Assembly (NCBI GenBank): GCA_965113315.1
Contig: OZ220363.1
Source: Podarcis vaucheri
Lineage: Eukaryota
Direction: 5' to 3' (one strand)
Length of the DNA: 64,000 nucleotides
In this document: positions 1-52,214 of the stretch, piece by piece
Layout of the letters: each line of letters starts with the position of its first letter
Position numbering within the stretch: position 1 is the stretch's first letter
The notes under the pieces: model-generated
The model's input: the letters and a program-made list of their open reading frames with translations, nothing else
What the model was told of the DNA's origin: nothing
Databases searched by the model: none
Made by a program: the position numbers and the translations under genes

Positions 1-493
1 ATGGAAAAGGTCTGGTGCATCAAAGAGTGGAGCCCACATAAAATGTTAAGTTCACTTCAGTTTTGCTGCTATTCTATGTGTTCCTAAGTCCTCAGCCAGC
101 AAGCAGTGCGACCTGTATGTGGTATCAGACCACCACAGGTCAACACAATGCAGACTGCAACTGTGGCACTATCCGAAGCATGAAGTAACCTAAGCACAGT
201 TCAGGCACCTCAAGAAAGGGAGTTAAGTTACATATTATATGCATTGTGTGATGGAGCAAATAAATAGGTTGAATAATATTTTCCTCGAAAGCAAAGATCA
301 AACCCAAGAGAAAGCAGACTACACAATCTTCTCTCACTCATACAGACAGAAGGAATTGCACAGCCATTCTTGCTCCTTCTGGCTCTTCCTCTGAATATCA
401 GGTACCCTGTTTTTAAGCTTTGAAAGGTATTTGGCTGGCTACCAGTTCCTAGAAAGCATGTTTGATTATAAAATACATACACTTCTTATTAGT

Positions 494-700
494 TACAGAT
501 AGGTAGCCGTGTTGGTCTGCCATAGTCAAAATAAAAAAATTCCTTCCAGTAGCACCTTAAAGACCAACTAAGTTAGTTCTTGGTATGAGCTTTCGTGTGC
601 ATGTATCTGAAGAAGTGTGCATGCACACGAAAGCTCATACCAAGAACTAACTTAGTTGGTCTTTAAGGTGCTACTGGAAGGAATTTTTTTTATTTTGACT
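494..700. mobile_element. Palindromic non-autonomous Penelope-like element with hammerhead ribozyme core
   Basis: Inverted arms 524-603/620-700, 30-nt unpaired tail 494-523, 13-bp flanking direct repeat ACTTCTTATTAGT (481-493, 698-710). Confidence 0.8.
603..640 (+). ncRNA. Minimal type I hammerhead ribozyme motif
   Basis: GTAT-CTGAAGA-A-GTGTG(catg)CACAC-GAAA-GC-TC^ATAC; stem I GTAT/ATAC; predicted cleavage after C636. Confidence 0.75.
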
Positions 701-3384
701 TCTTATTAGTGTTTAGTTTTGCAATTCTAAAACATGAAACACAGGTAGCCCCTTTAAGCCACTGGCCACCAGTGGAGTGGAGTGGGGCCTGATCCAAGGT
801 AAGTCACAACAGGAGCACTTCCACCTTGCAAATATACGGTAAAAGATTGAGAAATAGACCCCCAAATGCATGTTTGGGTTAAAAGTGAGTCCTGGGTCTG
901 AAAAGGTTGAAGATGCCTCCTTTAAACCGAACAAAGAAACTGTCTTGTAATAAATTAGGGGAGGGGACAGGAAGTGTCCCTGCATGACAACTTTTCACTC
1001 TTTATAAATGAGCAGAGGAACAACTTTTCTCCCTCATTTTGTCTGCTCTTCATGCTATAGTAGGCAAGTCTTTAGTTCTGTAAAACTAATGAAAGTTTTC
1101 AGGTGTTTCATTCCTATTTTCCTCCACAGCTTTCCTGGGCTTTGTTTCAGGGCCTGGGGGAGGAAGAGTTGTGAATGTGATATGACTCACTTGACTCCTA
1201 CTCAACCAAATTCCTGTTCCAATTGGTTCTCACTTATGATTTCAGCTTGGCGCATGAGTTATGCGAGCTTAACTTCCCCTTCTTTCCCTGCTGTTTTTGT
1301 TTTGTGATAAAGGACACGGAGCAAATGAATGCTAGCTCTCTGCTGCTGGCTTCCTTGAACTAGCGAACTGGTAGAAAATCACCCTTATCCCCGAACTTCA
1401 TAAATATAGCTATAGAAAATAAAAAAGGCTGTCTGATCTTGTTCGACACAGTAATGTAGTCTCTGTAATGTTAATAGGTGGAGTCATTGTTTGGCAGGTG
1501 TAACTGGTTTCTGTTCTATTACTTCCTCTACATTTCTCTGCTTTCTGGAAATGTTCCTTTTGTTCCTGTCTCTGCTTGCTGACATAGCATTTTAAATAGC
1601 TTGATAACAGACTTGATGTTTCAGAAAGCAAGCTTAAATGACTGATCAATGGTTGAATGCACATATAAACTCAGATATGGAACAGATTTCTTTGCTTGAT
1701 GTCAGCTGCCTATATTTCATTTTCATGTGTAAGTTTTCAGGTAAAGTAGTCTAATAAATTCAGATAGTGCAACATGGTTCGATAAACTACAAACCAGTCT
1801 TTTAAATAGCCACTTGCTTGGTTGCCTGATAAGAATCACGTATAAGTAGCCAGACAAGGCACTGACGTCCACCTGTCTCGAGAGACAATGGAGGAGTGCG
1901 CCTTTTAGGGGCAAAGACCAACTGTTGGGAGGTTGCAGCACCTGATAAGAATCACCCATAGGTAGCCAGGCAAGGAAAATAACATACTTCCAGGCCACCA
2001 CTGAGCCACAAATGGTCAACATAAGTAAATGTGGGTTGGTGGGGTGCTAAAGTTAGCTAGTGACTGAATTATCTTATTTGCAAGTCTGAGATAAGCAGTC
2101 ATTTCAGAGGATCCAAGTGCCTAGAAATGTCACCTAGATAGGTCAGGAGCCATAGAGTTCTAGAACAGATGACAGAAGTCTGGAATATACACCACTGTAA
2201 AGTGGTGGCGGCGGGGGTGGGGTGGGAGAACTTGATAAAAGAATGGACTGAGAAGGCAAAGTCTGAGTGGATTCAGTAGGCAATGGCTGAGCAGTTTTAA
2301 GAGTTGGCCAATGGCCACCAAAGGGGATGGGGGGGGGAGAGAGAAATCCAAAGAACCTGAAACAGATTCTGCTGTAGCAGAAAACGTACGGAGTTAAAAA
2401 ATTTAGGGAATTGGGTACTCTTAAGAGTTCAGGGCTATTGCTGTATGAAACACTGAACTACTTTTAAGACAAGAGTGTGTAAACTTTTTTTTGCTTGATT
2501 ACGTCCAATCTTTCAGGGACCTCATGCCAGCAGTGGGTGGGGATGAAGCCAAATGTGGGTAGGACACATGCATTCCTTTCTCCGCCCTATCTCTCATTTC
2601 CCCATCCTTACCGCCTGCATGAAATTAGCCTGATAGGTTTGTGCAGGATTGAAAACCAGGCAGGTTGTTTGAACTGTGAATGTCCTGGCTATACCACAGA
2701 TTCTAGGATGAACTGTGTAGGAACAATAGTGCATGGGGGGATTTCAATTGAAGTGCGCATAACTTCTGGTTTGAGGGCTGTATTATTATTGCCTATCATA
2801 TTTGATGGTTTCTGCATTCAGCCATTTGGGGGGAAAATGAGTTTTCTAATGGATGTGTGCAGTGTTTAATTTTTTAAAAAGAGTTTTTAAAGTTGCCAAT
2901 ATTTGTTAATCCATCTTGAGTTGAGACGCCTTCTGTAAGTGGGGGCAAAGTAGCTGGTAGCACTTTGGCCTAATGAGCCAGTATATTATTTTCATTTATT
3001 TCCTTGATCTGAAACATGACCATACTTTTAGGATCCCTCTTGAGTACTCGGAATGCATACTGAGGAGTTCATTAAGTAGCACCCAATAGGTTGAGAGAGC
3101 TCAATGATCCTACAGATATGTGTAACTATAGTGCCATGGTTAATTGCTAAATGACATCTTGTTTGAAGGACATGTCTATTCTGCCACTGCTGCCTGTCAG
3201 TTACACTCTCATTGTAACAGCTACTGTATCACACATAAGGGACAGTGCCGACGCAGTTGGCTTGGACCACCTAGATTAATCCTTTGAAAGCCAGACAGTG
3301 AATGGATTTATAAACAAGTGTATATAGTGTTTTGCAAGTTAAATAATGTAATGCCTGGTATTTTTGTGTCTGTTTCCATGATAG

Positions 3385-6500: not shown

Positions 6501-9500
6501 AAGTTCTTCAATAAGGGATTTTAGCAGACCTGATTATTTTTAGTTGTGGAATGTGTTGTGTAAATCATAAGAACTAGTGAAAACACTGTCATAATAGTGA
6601 CGCTAAAATCTAGTTGTGATGTGCTTTTGCTGATTATGCTGAAAGCCCCTCATTTTAGTCTTGATACTTTAGCTTTGAAATATCGCAGGAAATTGAAGGT
6701 GTTTCAACAATATAAAATTACATAAAATACCAAGTCAATTAAATCTGATAATGAAAAAGGAACATTAGAGCAACAGCAAAAACAAAAAAACTCAATTCAA
6801 TATCAAATGCTTGGAAAATTCTGCTAAAGTACACATTGCATCTACTTTGCACCTCGGTGTTCCTGGTTCCATGTTTGCTGAGTACAAGCACACACACCCT
6901 AATTGGTGTGTGTTGCTCCTGCTGCTCCTGCCCAGTACATTGTGCCCACTATTACAACTGTTGGTGGCCAAGGTTCTCAGACTCCTGTCTGCTACTGAAC
7001 AGTTAGTTCAACACTCTGTCAAGGGCATTTCTAGGCAAATTCTCCTGAATTCCCTAGCAACCAAAAGTCCATCTACCTGGATTCAGTATTAGCCTGTTAA
7101 CTCTTATCCATTTGATCACAGCCTACAAACACTGGTTCAAAACAAATTCCATTTGACACTGCCTGTAGCATCGTATAGGTACACTAATGTTTGGGGGACA
7201 TGGAATTGACAAGAGACATGGGGACATTATATGCGCCAAAGCATGTACTACCAAGACATGGTTGATTTCACACACAGTTCAGCAATGGATTAAGCAAGCC
7301 ATGGCATGTTGTTTCCTGTGCGGTTGTACGTCTATATGTGGAAGGTTTATTGAAAGTATTTGTAAAGGAGTGGACTGATTCCATACAGCTTTGACAGGTA
7401 AGAAATCGGTGTTTTAAATCTTCCCAGTTGCATTTCCCTTGCACTTCAGCTTCTGCTTTCTCACTTGTGAATTTCTAGAGCAAACTCTGTCCAGTTTGCG
7501 ATGAATAGGTTCCAAAGTGTTTTTTTTTTTTTCCTCTTAGAAGACGGTAACTACAGCTTCTATGATCACCACTAAGACACTACCTCTTGTCCTGAAAGCA
7601 GCAACAGCAACCATGCCTGCCTCCGTTGTGGGTCCAAGACCTACAATTGCCATGGTGACTGCCATCAATAGCAACCAGAAAACTGTCCTTAGCACTGATG
7701 CACAGAACACGCCAGTCAACCTCCAGACAACAAATAAAGTCACTGGTCCAGGAACAGAGGCAGTTCAAATAGTGGCAAAAAATACAGTCACATTGGTAAG
7801 CGGTCTTTGTTGCCTAGTGTTCTAAGGACGTGAGCCATTTTTTAAAATTTCCCTTGTTGAAACAGAGATGTGTGCCCTTTTGGGCATATACACGTATTGA
7901 GAAACTTTGTTTAATGTGAGAAAATACTTTTGCTCTAATGGGTTTCAATTTTTAAAATAATTTACTACTTTAACAAATGATTACTATCATATCATATATT
8001 TTTCCTTGGTGTGCTGAAAGATAATTGACAACGCACCTTCACTCCAACTTTTTACAATGCTGTGCTTGCCAATAAAGGCATGTAGGACCATGCATGGACT
8101 TTCCTTATTTAGGTTATGGTTTTAAATATATGTTCCTTTCACTGCTTATATTAAAATTATTTTAATGAGGCTCACCAACGTTGTCTATTTTTTGCTGCTG
8201 CTGGACCCACAAAGAAATCATCCTGCATGACGGGATCTAGCCAGCATCTTCCTCAACCTGCACACGAGTCTTTCTCAGGGGCGCTTTTGTGACTAACTAG
8301 TAACTCTGATAATCAGTTTCACAAAGTGCTAAGCAGCTGAAGCCTGCAGAAATGTAAAAATTAACTTGAGTGGAAAATATATCCTTGCGAGGGAGGCCAG
8401 GCATTTAAACGGAGTTTTGCTGTTTAAATAAGAATTGATCCAGAGCTGCAGCTGTAACGAAATCCATTTATACCCTAAAGTATTTCACTCCCAAAGCAAA
8501 TTACTGTATATGAAAACAGTGTTCTACACATTTAAGAGAGAACCAGAGTCCTAATGTACTAAATAATTTATCTAGTACCTAACATTTATCCTTCCAGCAT
8601 TTTTGAATATTATTGTTTATGCCCTCTTATCAAATATTTCAAAACATCCCCCCAAGTTATGAAGCCTTAGCACAATTAAGCATCATGTGCAGCTCCACTT
8701 GAATGGGCAGCCAAACCTGATTATTCTTTGTGGTTATTTGTAGCGCTTTGACTCGTAAAACAAAGAGGAGAATTCAAAAATGTCAAGGATGAGGGCATAT
8801 TTTTAAAAATAGTAGAGGTCTTGGGTTTTACATGCTGGTGAAACAAAAGGATACTTAGCTCCATTATGCCCATGAAATGCCATTTTATTTCAGAATGGCT
8901 TGAAGAGCAAGAATTATTTACTGTGAGAAAGGTAGGCTGTGCCTGAATAGCTTTGAAGTTGCTCATCACACCTATTCCCTTTGCTTAAATTTGTCTTCTT
9001 CCCACCCGCCCCACTCTTGTTGTTAGCAGGTTCAAGCTACACCTCCTCAGCCCATCAAAGTGCCACAGTTCATCCCTCCTCCCAGACTCACACCTCGTCC
9101 AAATTTTCTTCCACAGGTGAGTTTGTCCAAAACAGGAAAAGGGGTAGGAGTGGGGAGTTTGTCCTAAAAGTGTGACTTTGATTGGAAGAAGTACAACACC
9201 AGATGTTTCATATACCTGGTAATAATTGAACACTGCCTAATATGCTTTCCAGATTAAATCTCCAGCTTTGCTATCATATTTTTGTTTCCCTGTCAGCTCT
9301 CTAGCTTGCACTAGTTCTGTAAGAACTGAATTAAAGACGAGATGATGAAGAAATGCCTTGCTTGTTATAAGGTTATTGAGTGCTGAATATTTTTCATCGT
9401 TTCTTTGATTAAAGAGCCCCTATTTAATGTGAATCCTTAGCCTTTTTGTTAAGCAAAACGTAACTGTAATCTAATTAATATAGTTTCTAGCTTCCTGCTC

Positions 9501-12500
9501 CTTTCTTCCAAAGAGGAGCAGATTTTATCTAGAAATAACTTGAGCTGCAACTTTTTGAAAAAAATCTGATCTTTTACCCAAAGATGAAGGCATTATATAA
9601 TAGATTGTTTGCAGTATTTTAAATTACTAGAATTAATTTAGTTGCTCTCTCTCTCAGAGGATGCCATCTGCATCTCATTGAAGCTACATCTCTTCTCCTA
9701 CCCACACTGTTGATTTTTAATATAGTTGTTATTCAAATTCCTAGTTGTAATGTCAACAATCATTACCCAGTTATGAAAGAGAGGAAAGCGTGAAAATATT
9801 AACTGCTGCACTATAGATATGCCCATCCAAAGCTCTAGTCACCTGCATTTAACCCAAAGAAAGTTAGACGGGCTCAAAAATGTAATCCCTGATTGGAGGA
9901 GAGAGCTGTGTAATTCAGAAACTAGCTACTCTTGCCAACACAGTTGATCTAATAATAAATTAGAATGCATAGCTATTTGTATCCAATTTAGACACCCTAG
10001 ATTTTAGAAATACTTCAAATTAACAGACCTTTGAATTCCCCCAGATCTATCCAAAGATATTTTGGTAATGCAGTTGTATTTGATAACCTGCTTAGACTCC
10101 CCTCAACACTCAGTATTCCTTGAGAATATATCATTGCAAGTTGTGCTTCCAGACCTGTGCTTCCAGAACCAGTATATCCTTTTAAAGTATGATTAACATT
10201 GAATATGTGAAGATACAAAATGTAACATACAAAATGATGACAGTATTGTAGAAATGTACAAGAATGTGTGGTTAACATCTGCGCACTAGCAGTTAATGCA
10301 TAGTGCAGCCATTACTAGCCTGGCAGCTTTCAAGTGTTTTGGACCACAATTCCCTTCAGCCACAATTACAACGGGATATTGTGAAGGAGAATGAAAATCG
10401 TAGTTCAAAACCTCTGGAGGACAGTAGGCTGTGGAAGGCGAACACAGTGCAACAATCATAGCTGGAATTAAACAAGATTTGGGGCGGTTTTAAAAGTGTG
10501 GTAGGCCTGAAATGTACATGAGGGTTACATTCCAGGGATCTACTTGCAAAGACAAAATCATTCAACGTCAGGAAACCACGCACCCAACCTGGAACTGCCT
10601 TCCTCTGCAAGCAATTCCTACCCATCTTGATATTGGCGCACTGAGCAGGCAAGATCTTGGGAGCCTTGCAGGGCCTTCGTGGACCCTCACACAACCTTCT
10701 GAGAGTCCTATAAGTAAGGCAGAGGGCTTAAAAACTCTTTCCATGGCAGGAAAACTGGGTGCTGAAAGAGCCTTGTTTTCTAGGCTTTGGAAGGTCACAT
10801 GAGGGCTCTGGAGGCTTTTGTGAGAGATTGTGTGGCCCCTTCTGATGGTTTTTCCAGTCTCCCACCCTCTTTCTATTTATTTTTTGTTGAGGTATGCAAG
10901 GCTGCAATTGTGTAAGTTTTGGGCCTACTGTAGTTCTTTCCAGTGCAGATGTGTAGCACTATATAATACAAACACTATTGCAATCTGAGTCATATTTGTT
11001 GGCACAGCCATAAGTTATGTGTTAAGTACTATATCTTATCTATGCATGTGGTCTGATATGGGTTTCTCTCTCTCTTATGTAGGTTCGACCTAAACCTGTT
11101 GCCCAGAACAACATTCCTATCGCCCCTGCCCCACCTCCTCCTATGCTCGCTGCTCCTCAGCTTATTCAGAGGCCTGTGATGCTGACAACAAAATTCACAC
11201 CCACCTCCTTACCTTCCTCTCAGAATTCCATACACCCAGTCCGTGTAGTGAATGGGCAAACAGCAACCATAGCCAAAACTTTTCCAATGGCACAACTCAC
11301 CAGCATTGTTATAGCAGCCCCAGGTACCAGGCTTGCTGGACCTCAGACTCTACAAATCAGCAAACCAAATGTTGAGAAACAGGTACAGATGGAGAAATGC
11401 ATTAGTAGTTTAAACTGTGAATCGTTTCCTTCTCCTAAAGTCAATAGAATTAATGGAGATACAAATGCAATTAACCATAACATAAAACCTGTCCTCTCAT
11501 TGCCTCTCCTGTGGTTAGCAATCTTGTGTGACCAAGAACAGGTCTGTGCCCACTAGCCCTTCCATACCAGCCATCCCATCCCCTTCCATCGCCACTTAGA
11601 CTGTCCATATGTTGGAGAAGCCTGGGCACGCTCCCTGCACAATTTGGAATAGGGATGGGTGGATCAGTCCATTTCCAGCCTGTGTACATTTCCTGTATGT
11701 GCTCATAGGTGCATTCCATCCTGTTTCCATATTAAGCTGAGCAGTTTTTAAAAGACTGTCCAAAACTCTGCATTTAAATACATAAATATGTATTTTAATA
11801 TCAAAATATGTATTTAGTTGTGTATTTTCCAAAATGGCGTTTGGAAAGCCTATTTTATCCTGAAGCAAATTCCTATTTTTTAATGCATTTTGACACTTTT
11901 TTTTTGAGCCAAGAACGATATTGCAAAATTTGGAGAAGCACAAAATCCAAAGTATGATTATGTTTCAATCTGTTTATTTAGTCTGGGAGGTGCATTTGCT
12001 TAAAAATGCAGGCCAAGTGAAATTTTCCTCCATCCCAAATTTATAATCCTGATTTCATTGGGTTCTATATCACAGGGGGCGGATACACATATAGGGTATG
12101 CTCTCCTGTTCAGAGGTTTCTTGCAATGTATGGATGGGGCAGGGTTGGCAGAAGAGGACGCGGGTGGACAAGCCAGCAACTGTTCTCTGTCTCATGCCAA
12201 TCGTGAGATACAATGTGTGAAAAGAGATGGCTGATAATACCTTGTTCCTCAGACAGGGATTGGGAATGTACCAATAATTCATAATGAGTGAGCAGTTAAT
12301 TTGTGATTTTATATATAGTACACCAGAATAATTAAAATTTACTCGTTTTGTGCTTTTTCTGCTGCTTCAGCATGAAACATTAACCGTCAAATAATATTTA
12401 TCCATAATCTTGCTGACATTTATGATGAAGCAGACATTCAGATGACTTAATTACCATCAGTTTCAGCTAACCTTTTTTAAGTAGTTTATAACCCTGGACA

Positions 12501-15500
12501 TTTGAGAATTTCCTCTAATTCCATCTATCAGATGTAGGCCTTTTTGTGCAAATGCACTTTAAACTGACCTTTGAGTCTACTGATCTGTATTCTCAAAAGC
12601 TTGCTTGGTTTCAGTCTTTTAAGCTTGACAAATTTGCCACGAGCAGTTGTTTTTTAAGTAGACAGAAGTGTGTCACCTTCCCCCCAAAACTTACATTATC
12701 GTTCTCTCTTCAAAACACTCTGAAGCAGATGCAAGGTGATATGGCTCTGCAACAGGTGGCAATGTGCCAAGACTGGCCACAACTCTAGGTTTCATAGAAG
12801 CAAGGACCTTCAGCAAAAACCCTAGTACTTAAATGTGGAAGAAAAGCCTATGCGTAGTACCAGTGCAGAGAAACTGCCTTTCAGCCCTTATGTACTGAGG
12901 AAGGCTGCTTCCAGTCTGGTCATGGCTTTTCTTGTCATAAATAGGCAGAAAGTTTTCTCAGTGGCGTAGCGTGGGGGTTGCAGGGGGGGCCGGCCGCACC
13001 GGGCGCAACATCTGGGGGTTAGGGTTAGGGGGCGCAAATTACTTGCCTTGCCCCGGGTGCTGACAACCCACGCTACGCCACTGAGTTTTCTCAAGTGTGA
13101 ACAGAGCCAGACCTCTCTTTTCCACTTGCCAGTCTTAGGAATACACACACACACACACACACACACACATATTTATTTATAATAAAAGGTACATCCTCCT
13201 ACTTTTATTTTCTAAGGGAGATGTCCAAAGTGGCCACCATCATTTCAAATAAAACAATTAAGAAACAAGGTTTCATCCTCACTTGTCAAACCATTGGTCG
13301 AGTTTGCGCAAGCCACAAACCATAGTTTAGTGTTAGGTTCTTGAGTTTCCCCCTCTGCTCTTCCAGCACAACTGCACTTATAGTGTTAGTTGTGGTTCAT
13401 CCAAACAAGCAAGTGGGATCATACAGTCTAGTAGATGGGACCGAGAAGTAATTCAAAATAATTCACAATTTCAAACAATATGGTTCAAGTTATTTCTTTA
13501 TGTTTCTCTTATTTCTGAGTAAACACATTGAGAACATATTTGTCATCTTAGAACAGATGGATCTAATTTTGTGACGTCACAGCTATGTCTCAAAGTGGGA
13601 ATCATGGGCAGGCACTTATGATGCAATATGCAGGGGATTATGACATCACTAAGTGAATGAGTTTCAGGAAAACCCAGCACTTGGGAATTCTGGAGAACTT
13701 ATCTTCAGGCAAATTCTTGTTATAGTGAATAATGAATGAGAGAGATGCAAGGTGCATCTCTCAGGCAGATTGTTGTCTGGACAAGCTTTTCATGGAATGT
13801 TATTCCACAAAACGTCATCCCATCTGTAGTTATTCTGTTTACCAGGTCTCTCTTCTACATATCCCCTCTTACCCACATCTTAGATGCAAAGTTATTGTTA
13901 TTACATGATCTAGTTGCTGAATTGGGCTACTTAAGTGTTGCAGTTGTACCCTTGATGTTCTAAATAGTAATTTTTATTTGGGATTGTGTTTTCACTACTT
14001 AAAATGTACCTTACCACACTTTTTAAAGGAGCTCTTGGGGAAAATATTTAGTGTATTGTTCGGATTCATTTCCATCCGTTTCTTCATTTTGGTAAAGAAA
14101 AACACTGGCCGCTGTTTCTGTTTGTTTAGGAATTTAAGAAACCTGTGTTCACTTGCTGTTGTTTCCCTTTCAGACTATCAAGCCCCAAGTGGAAACAGAG
14201 GAGAAGCCAACAGAGATTCATACAGTTGCTCCTCCTGCACCACCCAAACCAAAACGAGAAGAAAACCCACAGGTACTAGTACAAATATCTACAATATCCT
14301 TTTGTGGGGTTGGGCAGATTTTTTTAAAAAATCTGTCTTTAGAAATGCTTATTTTCATCTACATTTTAATGCCACTTTTCCTCTTAAAAGAGATTCACAT
14401 TCTTCACAGTGTTATTGCTGCAGTGAAGAGGTCTATATGTCTGAGGAATGCTAAATCTAGCCACAAATTCCAGTTCACCAAATATTTTCAGGGCTAGAAG
14501 AAAGAAAGAGCATTATATAATATATTATGATAATGATGCATGTATGTAGCACTTAAGGGTGTTCAAAGTGCTTCATGTTTTCTTAGTAATTTTTGCAATA
14601 ACCCTGTAATGGTTAGGAGGCTGAAAGAATCTAGCCTTGCTTTAAGTTCTTGCCTAAGGTAAGGCTTGAACAGTGGCTTTTCCAGCTCTCTCTACTGTTC
14701 TATATAGATAGAAATCCAAAATTATCCTTAGCTCTTTTGAGTGTTCAGATTGCATCACACACGGCAACTTCTCCAATCCCACAGGCACATTTTAAACATG
14801 TTTCGGTTGGCCTTGTTTGACTAAGGAAAAGTTGTATTTGCTGGCGCCGTGACTGCCCCTCCCCTTTGCAAAGGTAGCATGGGGGCTTAAGGATGTCCCA
14901 AGAGACTTTGTGCATGGATGCCCAGTATACTCATCCTACACACAACAAACACACACTGGCCTTTCCTGAAAGCTGAGAGTGTCCTGACACCTCGGCTTGA
15001 AGGTGCTCCAAGTGTCTCCAGCCCTCCCTTCACCTTTCCTGTTTCCAAAGATGAAAATACACCCTGTGAAAAATCTCACAATTATGGTTTGTATAACAAA
15101 TAATAAGACCCAAATTATATTCACATAGTAGCTATATTGTACTGGTACATAGTAGCTATATTGTACTGGTACATGTTTTAATACCTGTACAAATTTAACA
15201 ATAAAGCTACAGCTCACTGGTAACCATTTCAACAAAGGAGCGTCTCCACCCCCATCATTCTACCCGGACACTGAGGTCCAGCACCGAGGGCCTTCTGGCG
15301 GTTCCCTCACTGCGAGAAGCCAAGTTACAGGGAACCAGGCAGAGGGCCTTCTCGGTAGTGGCGCCTTCCCTGTGGAACACCCTCCCACCAGATGTCAAAG
15401 AGAACAACAACTACCAGGCTTTTAGAAAACATCTGAAGGCAGCCCTGTTTCGGGAAGCTTTTAATGTTTGATGTATTATAGTATTTTAATATTCTTTTGG

Positions 15501-22500: not shown

Positions 22501-22950
22501 AACTTCTTCTCTGTACTACATCACTTCCTTTTTTTCATGCTAGCCAATGAGGAGCACTGGCCAAAGGTATGTAAGATTATTTCCCCTCCCCTTTTTGTTC
22601 CCTTTTGTTAATGTGTAGGTCGTCCACCTAAATACAACACGGTGCTGGGGTTTGGGGCTCTGACCCCCACATCCCCTCTGTCCAGTCATCCTGACTCCCC
22701 TGAAAATGAAAAGACAGAGACCACATTTTCTTTCCCCGCAACTGTTCATCCTGTGTCCCTGCCCAGCCCCAGCTCCACAGACGTAAGTAATTCTTCCTGA
22801 GAGGTTTGCTGTTCGAAGAGACCGTGGAGACTTCAGAATTTGGTTCTTTAGATGCACTGGTATTATGGTAAACTGCAATAATATGACCCCCTTCTTCAGC
22901 CCCCTACACTTCTACTTGTACCTATTCACCCCCCACCCAAACTCTGGAGT

Positions 22951-22983
<33 letters not shown>

Positions 22984-23238
22984 GCAGGTTTTGGTGTCTT
23001 CGGGTGTCTTCCCGTGTAAGAGTCGGGGTGTCTGTGCGACGTTTCGATGAGGTCTCACTCGTCATCTTCAGGCTGGTGCTTACGGCTTCTTGTTCCAGTA
23101 ACAAGAAGCCGTAAGCACCAGCCTGAAGATGACGAGTGAGACCTCGTCGAAACGTCGCACAGACACCCCGACTCTTACACGGGAAGACACCCGAAGACAC
23201 CAAAACCTGCATTCCTGTACCCGTGAAAATCTACGAAA

Positions 23239-23284
<46 letters not shown>

Positions 23285-26200: not shown

Positions 26201-29200
26201 AATGTCCTTGCTATTAAAACTAGTACTGGGGCCTTTGTTGCCATTTTACAGCTGGGGATGGTGTTTTGTGTTAGTCTGGTTTGGTCAAGGTTTTCCATCT
26301 CTTCTATCGAAAGGCCAAGTTTACGTAAAATAAATCAGAAAAAGTATACCTATTACTGGATATTGCAGTGATGCACCAAGGTTAAAGTTATATTAGGCTT
26401 AAAGTGGCGCATTAACTTAATTTTGCAACCAGTGCCTTCTACTTCCAAAATATGGAAAAGATGATGGCACATGAAACACATTTCTTAGGAAAGACTGTAG
26501 CTACCTTAAGAGGTAGCACCCAGGTGAAATTATGCTTATGCTCATGCTAAGCATGCCCAAGGCTATATTCCATAGCCTTTTGCAAACAATAATTTTATTG
26601 CACAATAAATATGTAGATCTTACTCATATTTGCAGAGAATCCAGGCAGCCTTTCTCCTCAGTGCTGTTCCCCAGATATCACATTTTGCCAACGTGTAGGT
26701 CACAGCTCTTTTGCCAATAGAAAGCATTAATTTTATGTTTTATCTTTGGCCCCCACCTGCTTAACCCATCCCCTTGCTTTCTTGTTTTGATTTGGCGTGC
26801 TGCGTGGAATGAGGCTGTACAGATGTCACAGGCACCTAGAAATGGCCATGACTTCACTGCTCACAATTTTCTGCCCCTATAGCTGTGCAGATTTTGCTTA
26901 TTTGCTTAGAGGCTTATCAATCCAGTGTGGTCATATAGCCATTGAAAATAAAGACATACAGTAGCAGCAGCAACCACCACAGCAAATCTCTCTTATCCAT
27001 CATGGTTAATGATATCAGCTTTTATTCCTTGTATATGTGTTAGTTTCACTCCTCTCCAGCATTGGAATATTCATATTCACTATTTGATTTATGCACTCTA
27101 TACCCAAACAAATTAAGCACCTCAGTATTGTGAGCTCCTAGTGTTGGATCGGGCTACTAGTGTTGGATTTAAATTATTAGTTGCTTACTACAAAAGTCTC
27201 TAATGGAGCAATCCTAACTATAGAAAGCTAGCATAAGTAATGCTGGCATGTTACAGTGGCAAAAGTTACCCTTATTCCAAACTCAGTTCAGAAGGAATAG
27301 GACACTCTTTGCCAGCTACATTGGCTGGGCTGCTGGGTCACTTGACTGAGCCAGAAGGTGTTTGAAAGAGGTGTAAGTCTCTCCTTGCTCTGCCACATCT
27401 CCAGAATGCCCCCTTCTGGGGGGAATTTGTGCTAGTATAAATGATACCGTCTTAAGATCCACCGGCTGAGCACCCATTAAGATCTGCCATATCCAAATTC
27501 TTTCATCCCAGTGGATCCTAGTTTCAATTACACTGCAAGTGACTTACAATCTTTTGGTTTTTAACTTTTTTGTAACAAAAAACAGAAGCTAAAGCATTCT
27601 GCACTACCAGGGCCACCTGTCCCTCAAGTGACAGCAGTGGATACAGATCATGGACCTTTCAGAATGAGTCTCACCCTGCCAAGAGCAGATTGCATGCCAT
27701 TCACCTGGTCAGAAGATCCACCTGCTAATCCATCTTGGCTGGATTAAGACTCATGTCATTGGTCCTCATCCAGTCCATTATCATGACAGGGCACCAATCA
27801 GCAGATCCACTGCCTACCTGCAGAAGATGACATAAGAGCTGTGTGTCATCGGCATGGTGATGACAGCACACTCTCAGACGCTGTCTAATCCCACCCAGCA
27901 TTAAGTGAAACGTGGGTGACAAGTTCTGCACCTCCTGGAGAACCGAACCTATTGCGGCACTTTAAAAATGTTTTCCATACAGTGGATCACTGGGACTTTC
28001 ACCCCACATTTAATTTCACTTACTTGGAAATAAGATGGGTGTGATCCTTAACTATATAAATAAGTGATCTGTGCTTTATAGTTTGAAATTGTACTAGGGT
28101 AGACATGGTGGCATTTGAAGAAGCTGTGGCCCTTGACGTTCCTTGTGGTTCTTTTCTGTCTGAAGAAAGTGGATCTAATCGTCAGGCACCCTTTGGTAGC
28201 TTTCTTTCTGTGTTTCATGAAAAGGATATTATTTGGGGAATTTCATTCACTTAGGACTTTACTTTGAACTGGAATTTAGTTTTCAAAGTTTGTAAGTTCC
28301 CTTTCCCCCCTCTAATTTTATAGGGTGATATCCATGAAGATTTTTGCAGTGTTTGCAGGAAAAGTGGGCAGTTGCTGATGTGTGACACGTGCTCACGTGT
28401 GTATCACTTGGACTGTCTGGACCCACCTCTGAAAACTATTCCCAAGGGCATGTGGATCTGTCCCAAATGTCAAGACCAGGTATTGTTTGACACAAAAGGG
28501 GAAGCCTCTCGCAATGGTTCTCTGCTTTTGGACAAAATGGGTGGGGCACATGGCTTAGACTTTGAGAGGGTGACAATATCTGACCTGAACTGAAATGGCC
28601 TCACAAATTCAAAGCCATCAAACGTTTGCTTTTCTGTTCCACGTCTCAGGATACTAAACAGCCATTTATTTGCCATGGCAAAGCTCGAAGACTTACGAGG
28701 AAGATTCCCTTTGATCCACTTGCATCTTTATCTATTTCTGCTTCCACAAAATAATGTTAGCTTCATTCTACAATACATGTGTTGGAAAGTCCAGTATTTT
28801 AAGGTCTAGGACAAAGCTACGTGCTGGAAAAGCAATGTTTGCATGATAATGCAGGGACACAGGGTATTTTACAGGTGCGAGTTAGCAGGCATGAGATAGA
28901 TGCTAAATCTTTCCCCATAGCTGGCTCTGAGAGCAAAAATAAGCCCAGCTGGGGAGGAACGTTTTGTGATGAATAACCACATGATTAAACACCCGTCTCC
29001 CACCCACCAATTCTCTTCTGGAAATGCCCCGCTACTCCTGCATTGCTGTTAACCAACAAACACATTTGTGGGAAATGCATGTTTGCCAAAGTAACATGTA
29101 GTTTTCTCCACGGAGACTGCTCTTTGCTATCAGAGTGTTTTTCCTTTAGCTAATTAGATCAGCAGTTTGTGAATCATGAAGTCACAATCCTCTCTACTGG

Positions 29201-31411: not shown

Positions 31412-31587
31412 NNNNNNNNNNNNNNNNNNNNNNNNNNNNNNNNNNNNNNNNNNNNNNNNNNNNNNNNNNNNNNNNNNNNNNNNNNNNNNNNNNNNNNNNN
31501 NNNNNNNNNNNNNNNNNNNNNNNNNNNNNNNNNNNNNNNNNNNNNNNNNNNNNNNNNNNNNNNNNNNNNNNNNNNNNNNNNNNNNNN
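31412..31587. other. Assembly gap (176 N)
   Basis: Run of N. Confidence 1.
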
Positions 31588-32425: not shown

Positions 32426-32577
32426 NNNNNNNNNNNNNNNNNNNNNNNNNNNNNNNNNNNNNNNNNNNNNNNNNNNNNNNNNNNNNNNNNNNNNNNNNNN
32501 NNNNNNNNNNNNNNNNNNNNNNNNNNNNNNNNNNNNNNNNNNNNNNNNNNNNNNNNNNNNNNNNNNNNNNNNNNNNN
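32426..32577. other. Assembly gap (152 N)
   Basis: Run of N. Confidence 1.

Positions 32578-40805: not shown

Positions 40806-52214
<11,409 letters not shown>

Follow-up and report, generated by a model that had tools for sequence, protein, structure and literature searches.

Penelope-like elements (PLEs) insert in 5′-truncated form, often with an inverted, likewise 5′-truncated copy at their 5′ side, with a tail of 30–40 bp at one end and a hammerhead ribozyme within the repeated end (PMC8557442); the one-sided 30–40-bp tail is also described in PMC11167929. Here we describe a hairpin insertion at positions 494–700 of a 64,000-nucleotide stretch from the lizard Podarcis vaucheri (GenBank assembly GCA_965113315.1, contig OZ220363.1), hereafter the window. 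The insertion very probably stems from a single recent retrotransposition that left two 5′-truncated PLE 3′ end modules head to head at an AT-rich site within an intron of a PHF21A-like gene.

Two PLE systems offer the closest points of reference. In Adineta vaga, inverted pseudo-long terminal repeats (pLTRs) carry a 31-bp tail on one copy and are flanked by 8–10-bp duplications, and palindromes at their junctions have been read as products of self-priming; in some PLEs, the pLTR together with the tail contains the first codons (PMC3846280). The purified protein of the Anolis element Poseidon nicks and extends both strands at an AT-rich/ATT target, its reverse transcription beginning at two internal starts in a stem-loop that is AC-rich, with the tail corresponding to the stretch between them (PMC11167929). 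The Anolis hammerhead depends on the element protein, and insertion in vitro can proceed without the ribozyme (PMC11167929).

Minimal hammerhead ribozymes (min-HHRs) sit in pLTRs and are characterized by a base between positions 9 and 10.1, a G10.1–C11.1 pair, a palindromic 15.2/16.2 and a short helix I, features that go beyond the authors' own descriptor (Cervera and de la Pena 2014, PMC4209133). Their cleavage is weak even as dimers (PMC4209133). Animal retrozymes have been linked to PLE pLTRs in a preprint (10.64898/2026.07.22.740005).

Anatomy of the insertion

The inserted copy measures 207 bp and, with its flanking repeats, is composed of the following parts.

481–493, no strand: left copy of the target-site duplication (TSD), ACTTCTTATTAGT, 100% identical to the right copy; related organisms with a single copy only
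494–523, minus strand: tail of 30 nt, by which the inverted copy extends further at its 3′ end; in sense orientation ATGGCAGACCAACACGGCTACCTATCTGTA, AC-rich
524–603, minus strand: inverted 5′-truncated element end, its inner end lying within the palindromic helix II/loop II (CATG)
603–640, plus strand: loopless type I minimal hammerhead, matching the descriptor, with a predicted cut after C636
604–619, plus strand: unique spacer of 16 nt, the 5′ extension of the plus copy, from which the CUGAAGA box and helix II's 5′ strand derive
620–700, plus strand: plus copy of the element end, tail-less, 81 nt, terminating in ...TTTTGACT, its final 3 bases shared with the TSD
698–710, no strand: right copy of the TSD, ACTTCTTATTAGT

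Once reverse complemented, the arms at 524–603 (80 nt) and 620–700 (81 nt) are identical save for a T7/T8 run, with zero substitutions between them. The 30-nt tail at 494–523 is present on the left side only and has no counterpart in the right arm. Both features agree with a preliminary description of this DNA, which had reported the two inverted arms, differing by one base in an A/T run, and an unpaired 30-nt tail. Contigs of related organisms contain other copies of the family in which a tail-like related sequence follows the equivalent of position 697. The same description gave the duplication as 13 bp; the repeats at 481–493 and 698–710 are indeed identical, but their true length is 10–13 bp because ACT at 698–700 belongs both to the end of the right arm and to the start of the repeat. 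The target 13-mer is AT-rich and includes ATT, and the tail, AC-rich in sense (CAGACCAACACGGCUACC), forms a weak stem-loop.

As RNA, the 481–710 region folds into one hairpin of −151 kcal/mol, with a z-score of −24.7 relative to shuffled sequences. No open reading frame (ORF) of at least 30 aa lies within the insertion, which had been called ORF-less, and the stretch from the hammerhead to the tail contains stops in all three frames. The tail begins with an ATG whose frame is open through the tail end (MADQHGYLSV), and the family may be non-autonomous or may have an ORF that begins at this codon. A blastn search at word size 7 found no further family copies within the 64-kb window.

Empty sites, age and abundance

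Contigs of four related organisms (B, C, D and F) were placed on positions 1–1500 of the window. Organisms C, D and F each provide one contig that is continuous from 480 to 698 without a gap (X4 record 10, X6 record 16 and X9 record 23), lacking exactly 217 bp and retaining one copy of the 13-mer. An empty site with a single ACTTCTTATTAGT, which the preliminary description had anticipated in relatives, is thereby found in three organisms, whose flanks diverge from the window by ~2–3% plus a few indels. The site is filled in organism B, whose contigs enter the element from both flanks at 2–515 (X3 record 1) and 673–910 (record 3); its flank differs at 2 of 514 positions, a divergence of ~0.4%.

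Because the sites of C, D and F are empty, the insertion postdates the split from these organisms, and the zero substitutions between the arms are consistent with a recent date. A recent origin of the 494–700 insertion is thus supported, as its earlier characterization as young had proposed.

The family itself is very abundant, with 9,500–14,700 contigs per relative aligning to 494–700, about one third of them at an identity of at least 99%, and the flanks at single-copy depth; only abundance is claimed from this similarity search, because contig depth is not copy number. Among the positions listed for the relatives' contigs, none within 494–700 differs in at least 10% of contig depth. At other fold-back loci in these contigs the inner arm ends vary and the outer ends are fixed, a signature of 5′ truncation during reverse transcription.

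Other features of this region were also recorded. Small indels separate the relatives, comprising a 17-bp insertion behind position 290 in C, D and F, a 25-bp deletion in D (region 126–150) and a 16-bp deletion in F (region 176–191), all of them possible markers for the order of the species. Positions 786–926 hold another dispersed repeat, unrelated to the hairpin, which is matched by dozens of contigs per relative at ~85–90% and reaches a summed depth of 10^3–10^4 versus ~10 on the flanks.

The hammerhead motif

The plus-strand motif at 603–640 is composed of GUAU (603–606), CUGAAGA (607–613), one extra A (614), GUGUG (615–619) paired with CACAC (624–628) around a CAUG loop, GAAA (629–632), GC followed by UC with the predicted cut behind it, and AUAC (637–640). 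All type I boxes are present in the correct order, each lying where a complete core had previously been read across the spacer and right arm. Loop 3 is absent, leaving AGCU able to pair with a second copy in a duplex of −3.9 kcal/mol. Helix II comprises 5 bp and is a perfect palindrome closed by a 4-nt loop, and helix I comprises 4 bp. An extra base after position 9, a G10.1–C11.1 pair, a palindromic 15.2/16.2 and U16.1–H17 complete the motif.

The window was scanned with a min-HHR descriptor specifying CUGANGA, 0–1 extra base, a helix II of at least 4 bp, GAAA, complementary 15.2/16.2, U, H and helix I. With a helix I of at least 4 bp, 603–640 is the sole match in the 64-kb window; with at least 2 bp, there are two matches, 603–640 and 23121–23158, both within PLE-type hairpins. 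In 1,300 random 64-kb sequences of the same dinucleotide make-up, searched on both strands, chance matches per 64 kb number 0 (helix I of at least 4 bp) and 0.001 (at least 2 bp). The 603–640 motif is no chance match.

The plus copy alone favours a different fold over the hammerhead (−11.3 versus −6.8 kcal/mol). In the full RNA, forcing helices I and II yields −110.8 kcal/mol versus −151 kcal/mol for the hairpin, a cost of ~40 kcal/mol that agrees with the previous suggestion that the ribozyme is masked by its own antisense arm.

One metagenome scan for relaxed hammerheads or family copies returned a single match, at 1482–1516 of L001, which is attributable to chance: it is without helix II, lies on an unrelated contig and has zero similarity to the family. 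No family copies were found in scans of viral contigs, and searches of literature full text for sequence strings of the family gave no match.

A second hairpin in the window

The second descriptor match belongs to another PLE-type fold-back at 22982–23240, inserted inside a (TA)n microsatellite, with a sequence unrelated to that of 494–700 and the same layout. It is composed of the following parts.

~22984–23098 and 23103–23210: the two arms
23121–23158, plus strand: min-HHR with a 6-bp helix II and ACGU
23211–23240: tail of 30 nt, on the right side only

The motif is kept on one strand only, because the inverted arm carries a helix II mismatch (CTCATC for CTCGTC). An ATG at 23129, inside the hammerhead, opens a frame that continues to the tail end, as in the Anolis element Poseidon_Ac. 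The distance from the predicted cut to the two 3′ ends is 54/84 nt, compared with 64/94 nt in the 494–700 insertion and ~59/89 nt in Poseidon_Ac, the last being our estimate from the published cut at +26 and start at +111–118.

Comparison with described elements

The inverted truncated copy, the tail, the AT-rich target and the loopless hammerhead are published hallmarks of PLEs (PMC8557442, PMC3846280, PMC4209133, PMC11167929), and the Penelope-type affiliation given in the preliminary description is supported. The insertion shows the 5′-truncated inverted copy, a one-sided tail within the 30–40-bp range and a hammerhead in the repeated end, together with a short TSD at an AT-rich site that is empty in genomes without the copy. 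The element is of a known kind, a standard form of a very abundant element, and represents no new kind of element or ribozyme.

Like Pen2a_Av of Adineta vaga (PMC3846280; PMC8557442), the insertion combines a head-to-head 5′-truncated copy, a tail of 30–31 bp on one arm, a junction palindrome and a hammerhead within the repeated end; the TSD spans 8–10 bp in Pen2a_Av (PMC3846280) and 10–13 bp here. Unlike Pen2a_Av, 494–700 has neither an ORF nor a direct pair of pLTRs, consisting only of the last ~100–130 nt, present twice, and it belongs to another sequence family.

The resemblance to Poseidon_Ac (PMC11167929) extends to the hammerhead, which is loopless and combines CUGANGA and one extra base with helix II, GAAA, a palindromic NN and UC, and to two starts of reverse transcription ~30 nt apart and 60–90 nt past the cut, at an AT-rich/ATT target. 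Nicking and extension of both strands by the Poseidon_Ac protein would explain fold-back products. In contrast to Poseidon_Ac and the hairpin at 22982–23240, whose ORFs begin inside the hammerhead, 494–700 is closed from the hammerhead to the tail, and its first open ATG lies at the tail. Helix II of the 494–700 family, at 5 bp and itself a perfect palindrome, also distinguishes it from Poseidon_Ac.

As in the min-HHRs of metazoan PLEs (PMC4209133), helix III and loop 3 are missing, helix I is 4–5 bp long, an unpaired base lies between 9 and 10.1, G10.1 pairs with C11.1, and the palindromic 15.2/16.2 would permit a dimeric helix III; the motifs likewise occur as single scattered copies or as pairs on opposite strands. 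Helix II measures 5 bp compared with the 7–8 bp typical of the Schistosoma min-HHR, and cleavage at 603–640 is predicted.

Non-LTR retrozymes (PMC7229834; 10.64898/2026.07.22.740005) share with 494–700 a short non-coding unit, a type I hammerhead and kinship to pLTRs. They consist, however, of direct tandem repeats giving circular RNAs, whereas 494–700 comprises one inverted pair in which a single motif is complete and therefore has no unit bounded by two cuts. Membership among the non-LTR retrozymes is accordingly rejected, the second copy being inverted and cut off inside helix II.

The host gene

An AT-hook (GRPPK) exon near 22.6 kb (22600–22780) and a PHD-finger exon at 28345–28416 (Pfam PHD, E = 9e-14) are both encoded on the plus strand. 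A LARGE-like ORF (Glyco_transf_49, E = 3e-10) at 40967–41695 on the minus strand is convergent with this gene. The host gene appears to be PHF21A-like, a name suggested by the AT-hook and PHD pair and by the neighbourhood of PHF21A with LARGE2 in human. Because the host gene is on the plus strand, the hammerhead motif is sense to its pre-mRNA, as had been noted. The motif is probably inert here, since the 80-bp hairpin with its own antisense arm buries it; most likely it is a passenger in the host pre-mRNA. Runs of N occupy 31412–31587 (176 bases) and 32426–32577 (152 bases) of the window.

Formation of the insertion

The layout of the locus leads us to infer twin priming followed by a template jump. 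The PLE endonuclease would nick both strands 10–13 bp apart, leaving two 3′ ends. The top-strand 3′ end would prime cDNA synthesis from the outer internal start, giving the tail and arm at 494–603 on the minus strand, and the bottom-strand 3′ end would prime from the inner start with ACT microhomology, giving the tail-less plus copy from 700 back to ~602. The first cDNA would stop within the palindromic helix II, where a template jump at the TG/CA microhomology of 602–603 would join it to the 3′ end of the second cDNA. The plus copy extends far enough 5′ to include the complete minimal hammerhead of the element, and the inverted copy ends inside helix II. The hammerhead would be a normal part of the element, with a role, if any, in processing of the element RNA aided by the element protein.

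Several observations weigh against this origin by PLE retrotransposition. No ORF for a PLE reverse transcriptase with GIY-YIG is present in the 64-kb window, and twin priming is extrapolated from in vitro work on a different PLE family. Helix I is just 4 bp long, and the monomer fold, at −6.8 to −7.6 kcal/mol (z = −0.3), is not better than those of shuffled sequences. The Rfam hammerhead models (Hammerhead_1, _3, _II, HH9 and HH10) gave no match at E ≤ 10 or at the gathering score in 400–800, in 598–700 or in the whole window; this negative is uninformative, with loopless forms falling outside those models, because the Poseidon-like motif at 23121–23158, which served as a control, was missed as well. 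The control motif has the build of the Anolis Poseidon hammerhead, for which cleavage has been demonstrated (PMC11167929).

Alternative readings

Joints between arms in the contigs of related organisms bear on where the element RNA begins. Among the best-supported 15 of 218 joints, many fold-back loci have a plus copy that again starts at 602/603, joined to inverted-arm ends at 511, 516, 518, 531, 554, 556, 557, 561 and 569; a second cluster of plus-copy starts falls at 617–622, inside the palindrome, and a joint from 585 to 637 begins exactly at the predicted cleavage product. The union of variable inverted arms with one 602/603 start would be expected if 494–700 were instead a full-length, ~130-nt non-autonomous PLE-tail retroposon, similar to a retrozyme or a short interspersed nuclear element, whose RNA runs from the first base of helix I at 602/603 to the tail and is mobilised in trans by a PLE enzyme. 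We regard this as possible, though improbable. The stops in all three frames between hammerhead and tail, set beside the open frame kept by the second hairpin at 23129–23240, also speak for it, as does the reported tie between animal retrozymes and PLE pLTRs (10.64898/2026.07.22.740005).

Against such a retroposon, longer copies exist that extend upstream of 602 with ...CTTCTGTTTCAG (46–57 contigs per run), and the ATG with which the tail begins, open to the end, could be where an autonomous ORF begins (compare PMC3846280). Any longer copy would moreover be clipped at 602/603, since the reference changes there. Because this clipping is expected and the start evidence comes from the best 15 of 218 joints, a defined RNA 5′ end is a lead only. 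The upstream CTTCTGTTTCAG resembles a splice acceptor placed directly against hammerhead helix I. It is rather improbable that the family as a whole is a ~130-nt PLE-tail retroposon with a template starting exactly at 602/603 after this splice-acceptor-like sequence, its usual product being a perfect hairpin primed from both nicks.

A different route to the head-to-head form, in which an antisense template snaps back at the palindrome GTGTGCATGCACAC and self-primes, in place of priming at two nicks, is unlikely. The inverted arm does end exactly mid-palindrome (CATG, 14-nt), the plus copies of other loci that begin at 617–622 lie within it, and palindromes at inverted PLE junctions have been interpreted in this way (PMC3846280). 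Self-priming nevertheless fits the locus less well, because it predicts a perfect palindrome with no unique spacer, whereas the plus copy here runs 16–18 nt beyond. The presence of the tail at one 3′ end but not the other is what two separate initiations would give, and extension of both strands has been demonstrated in vitro (PMC11167929).

It is very improbable that the host uses the hairpin or ribozyme, whether to switch the PHF21A pre-mRNA by self-cleavage or to supply a precursor of small RNAs. The motif has the same orientation as the host gene, a perfect RNA duplex of 80 bp could plausibly be edited or diced, and Rfam microRNA and leader models gave weak matches of the generic long-hairpin type, all far under threshold. 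The insertion is not conserved, however, as it is absent from three close relatives, and the motif is masked by the hairpin; min-HHRs are poor cleavers even as dimers (PMC4209133), and the Anolis motif is protein-dependent (PMC11167929).

Although fold-back DNA transposons (miniature inverted-repeat transposable elements) also have long inverted repeats at their termini and direct repeats on their flanks, such an origin with a fortuitous hammerhead-like string is scarcely credible given the asymmetric ends with a one-sided 30-nt tail, a 10–13-bp duplication that is unusual for these transposons, the variable inner and fixed outer arm ends across loci, the chance rate of the motif of ~0.001 or less per 64 kb, and the second hairpin of unrelated sequence and identical layout in the same window.

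Significance

Read as the product of PLE retrotransposition, one locus displays the TSD, both starts of reverse transcription (with tail and tail-less), a join through microhomology and a dated empty site, making it a textbook example. It agrees with the nicking and extension of both strands by the lizard PLE enzyme in vitro and would provide a natural product for a mechanism supported mainly in vitro. If the family were indeed a retroposon with a fixed 5′ end, that end would indicate a defined processing or start site beside the ribozyme, and its thousands of hairpins, many of them intragenic, would be a lineage-specific source of long dsRNA in lizard pre-mRNAs. At this locus, the intron of a chromatin-regulator gene has gained a perfect 80-bp hairpin that is young and lineage-specific and could matter for RNA editing or small RNAs.

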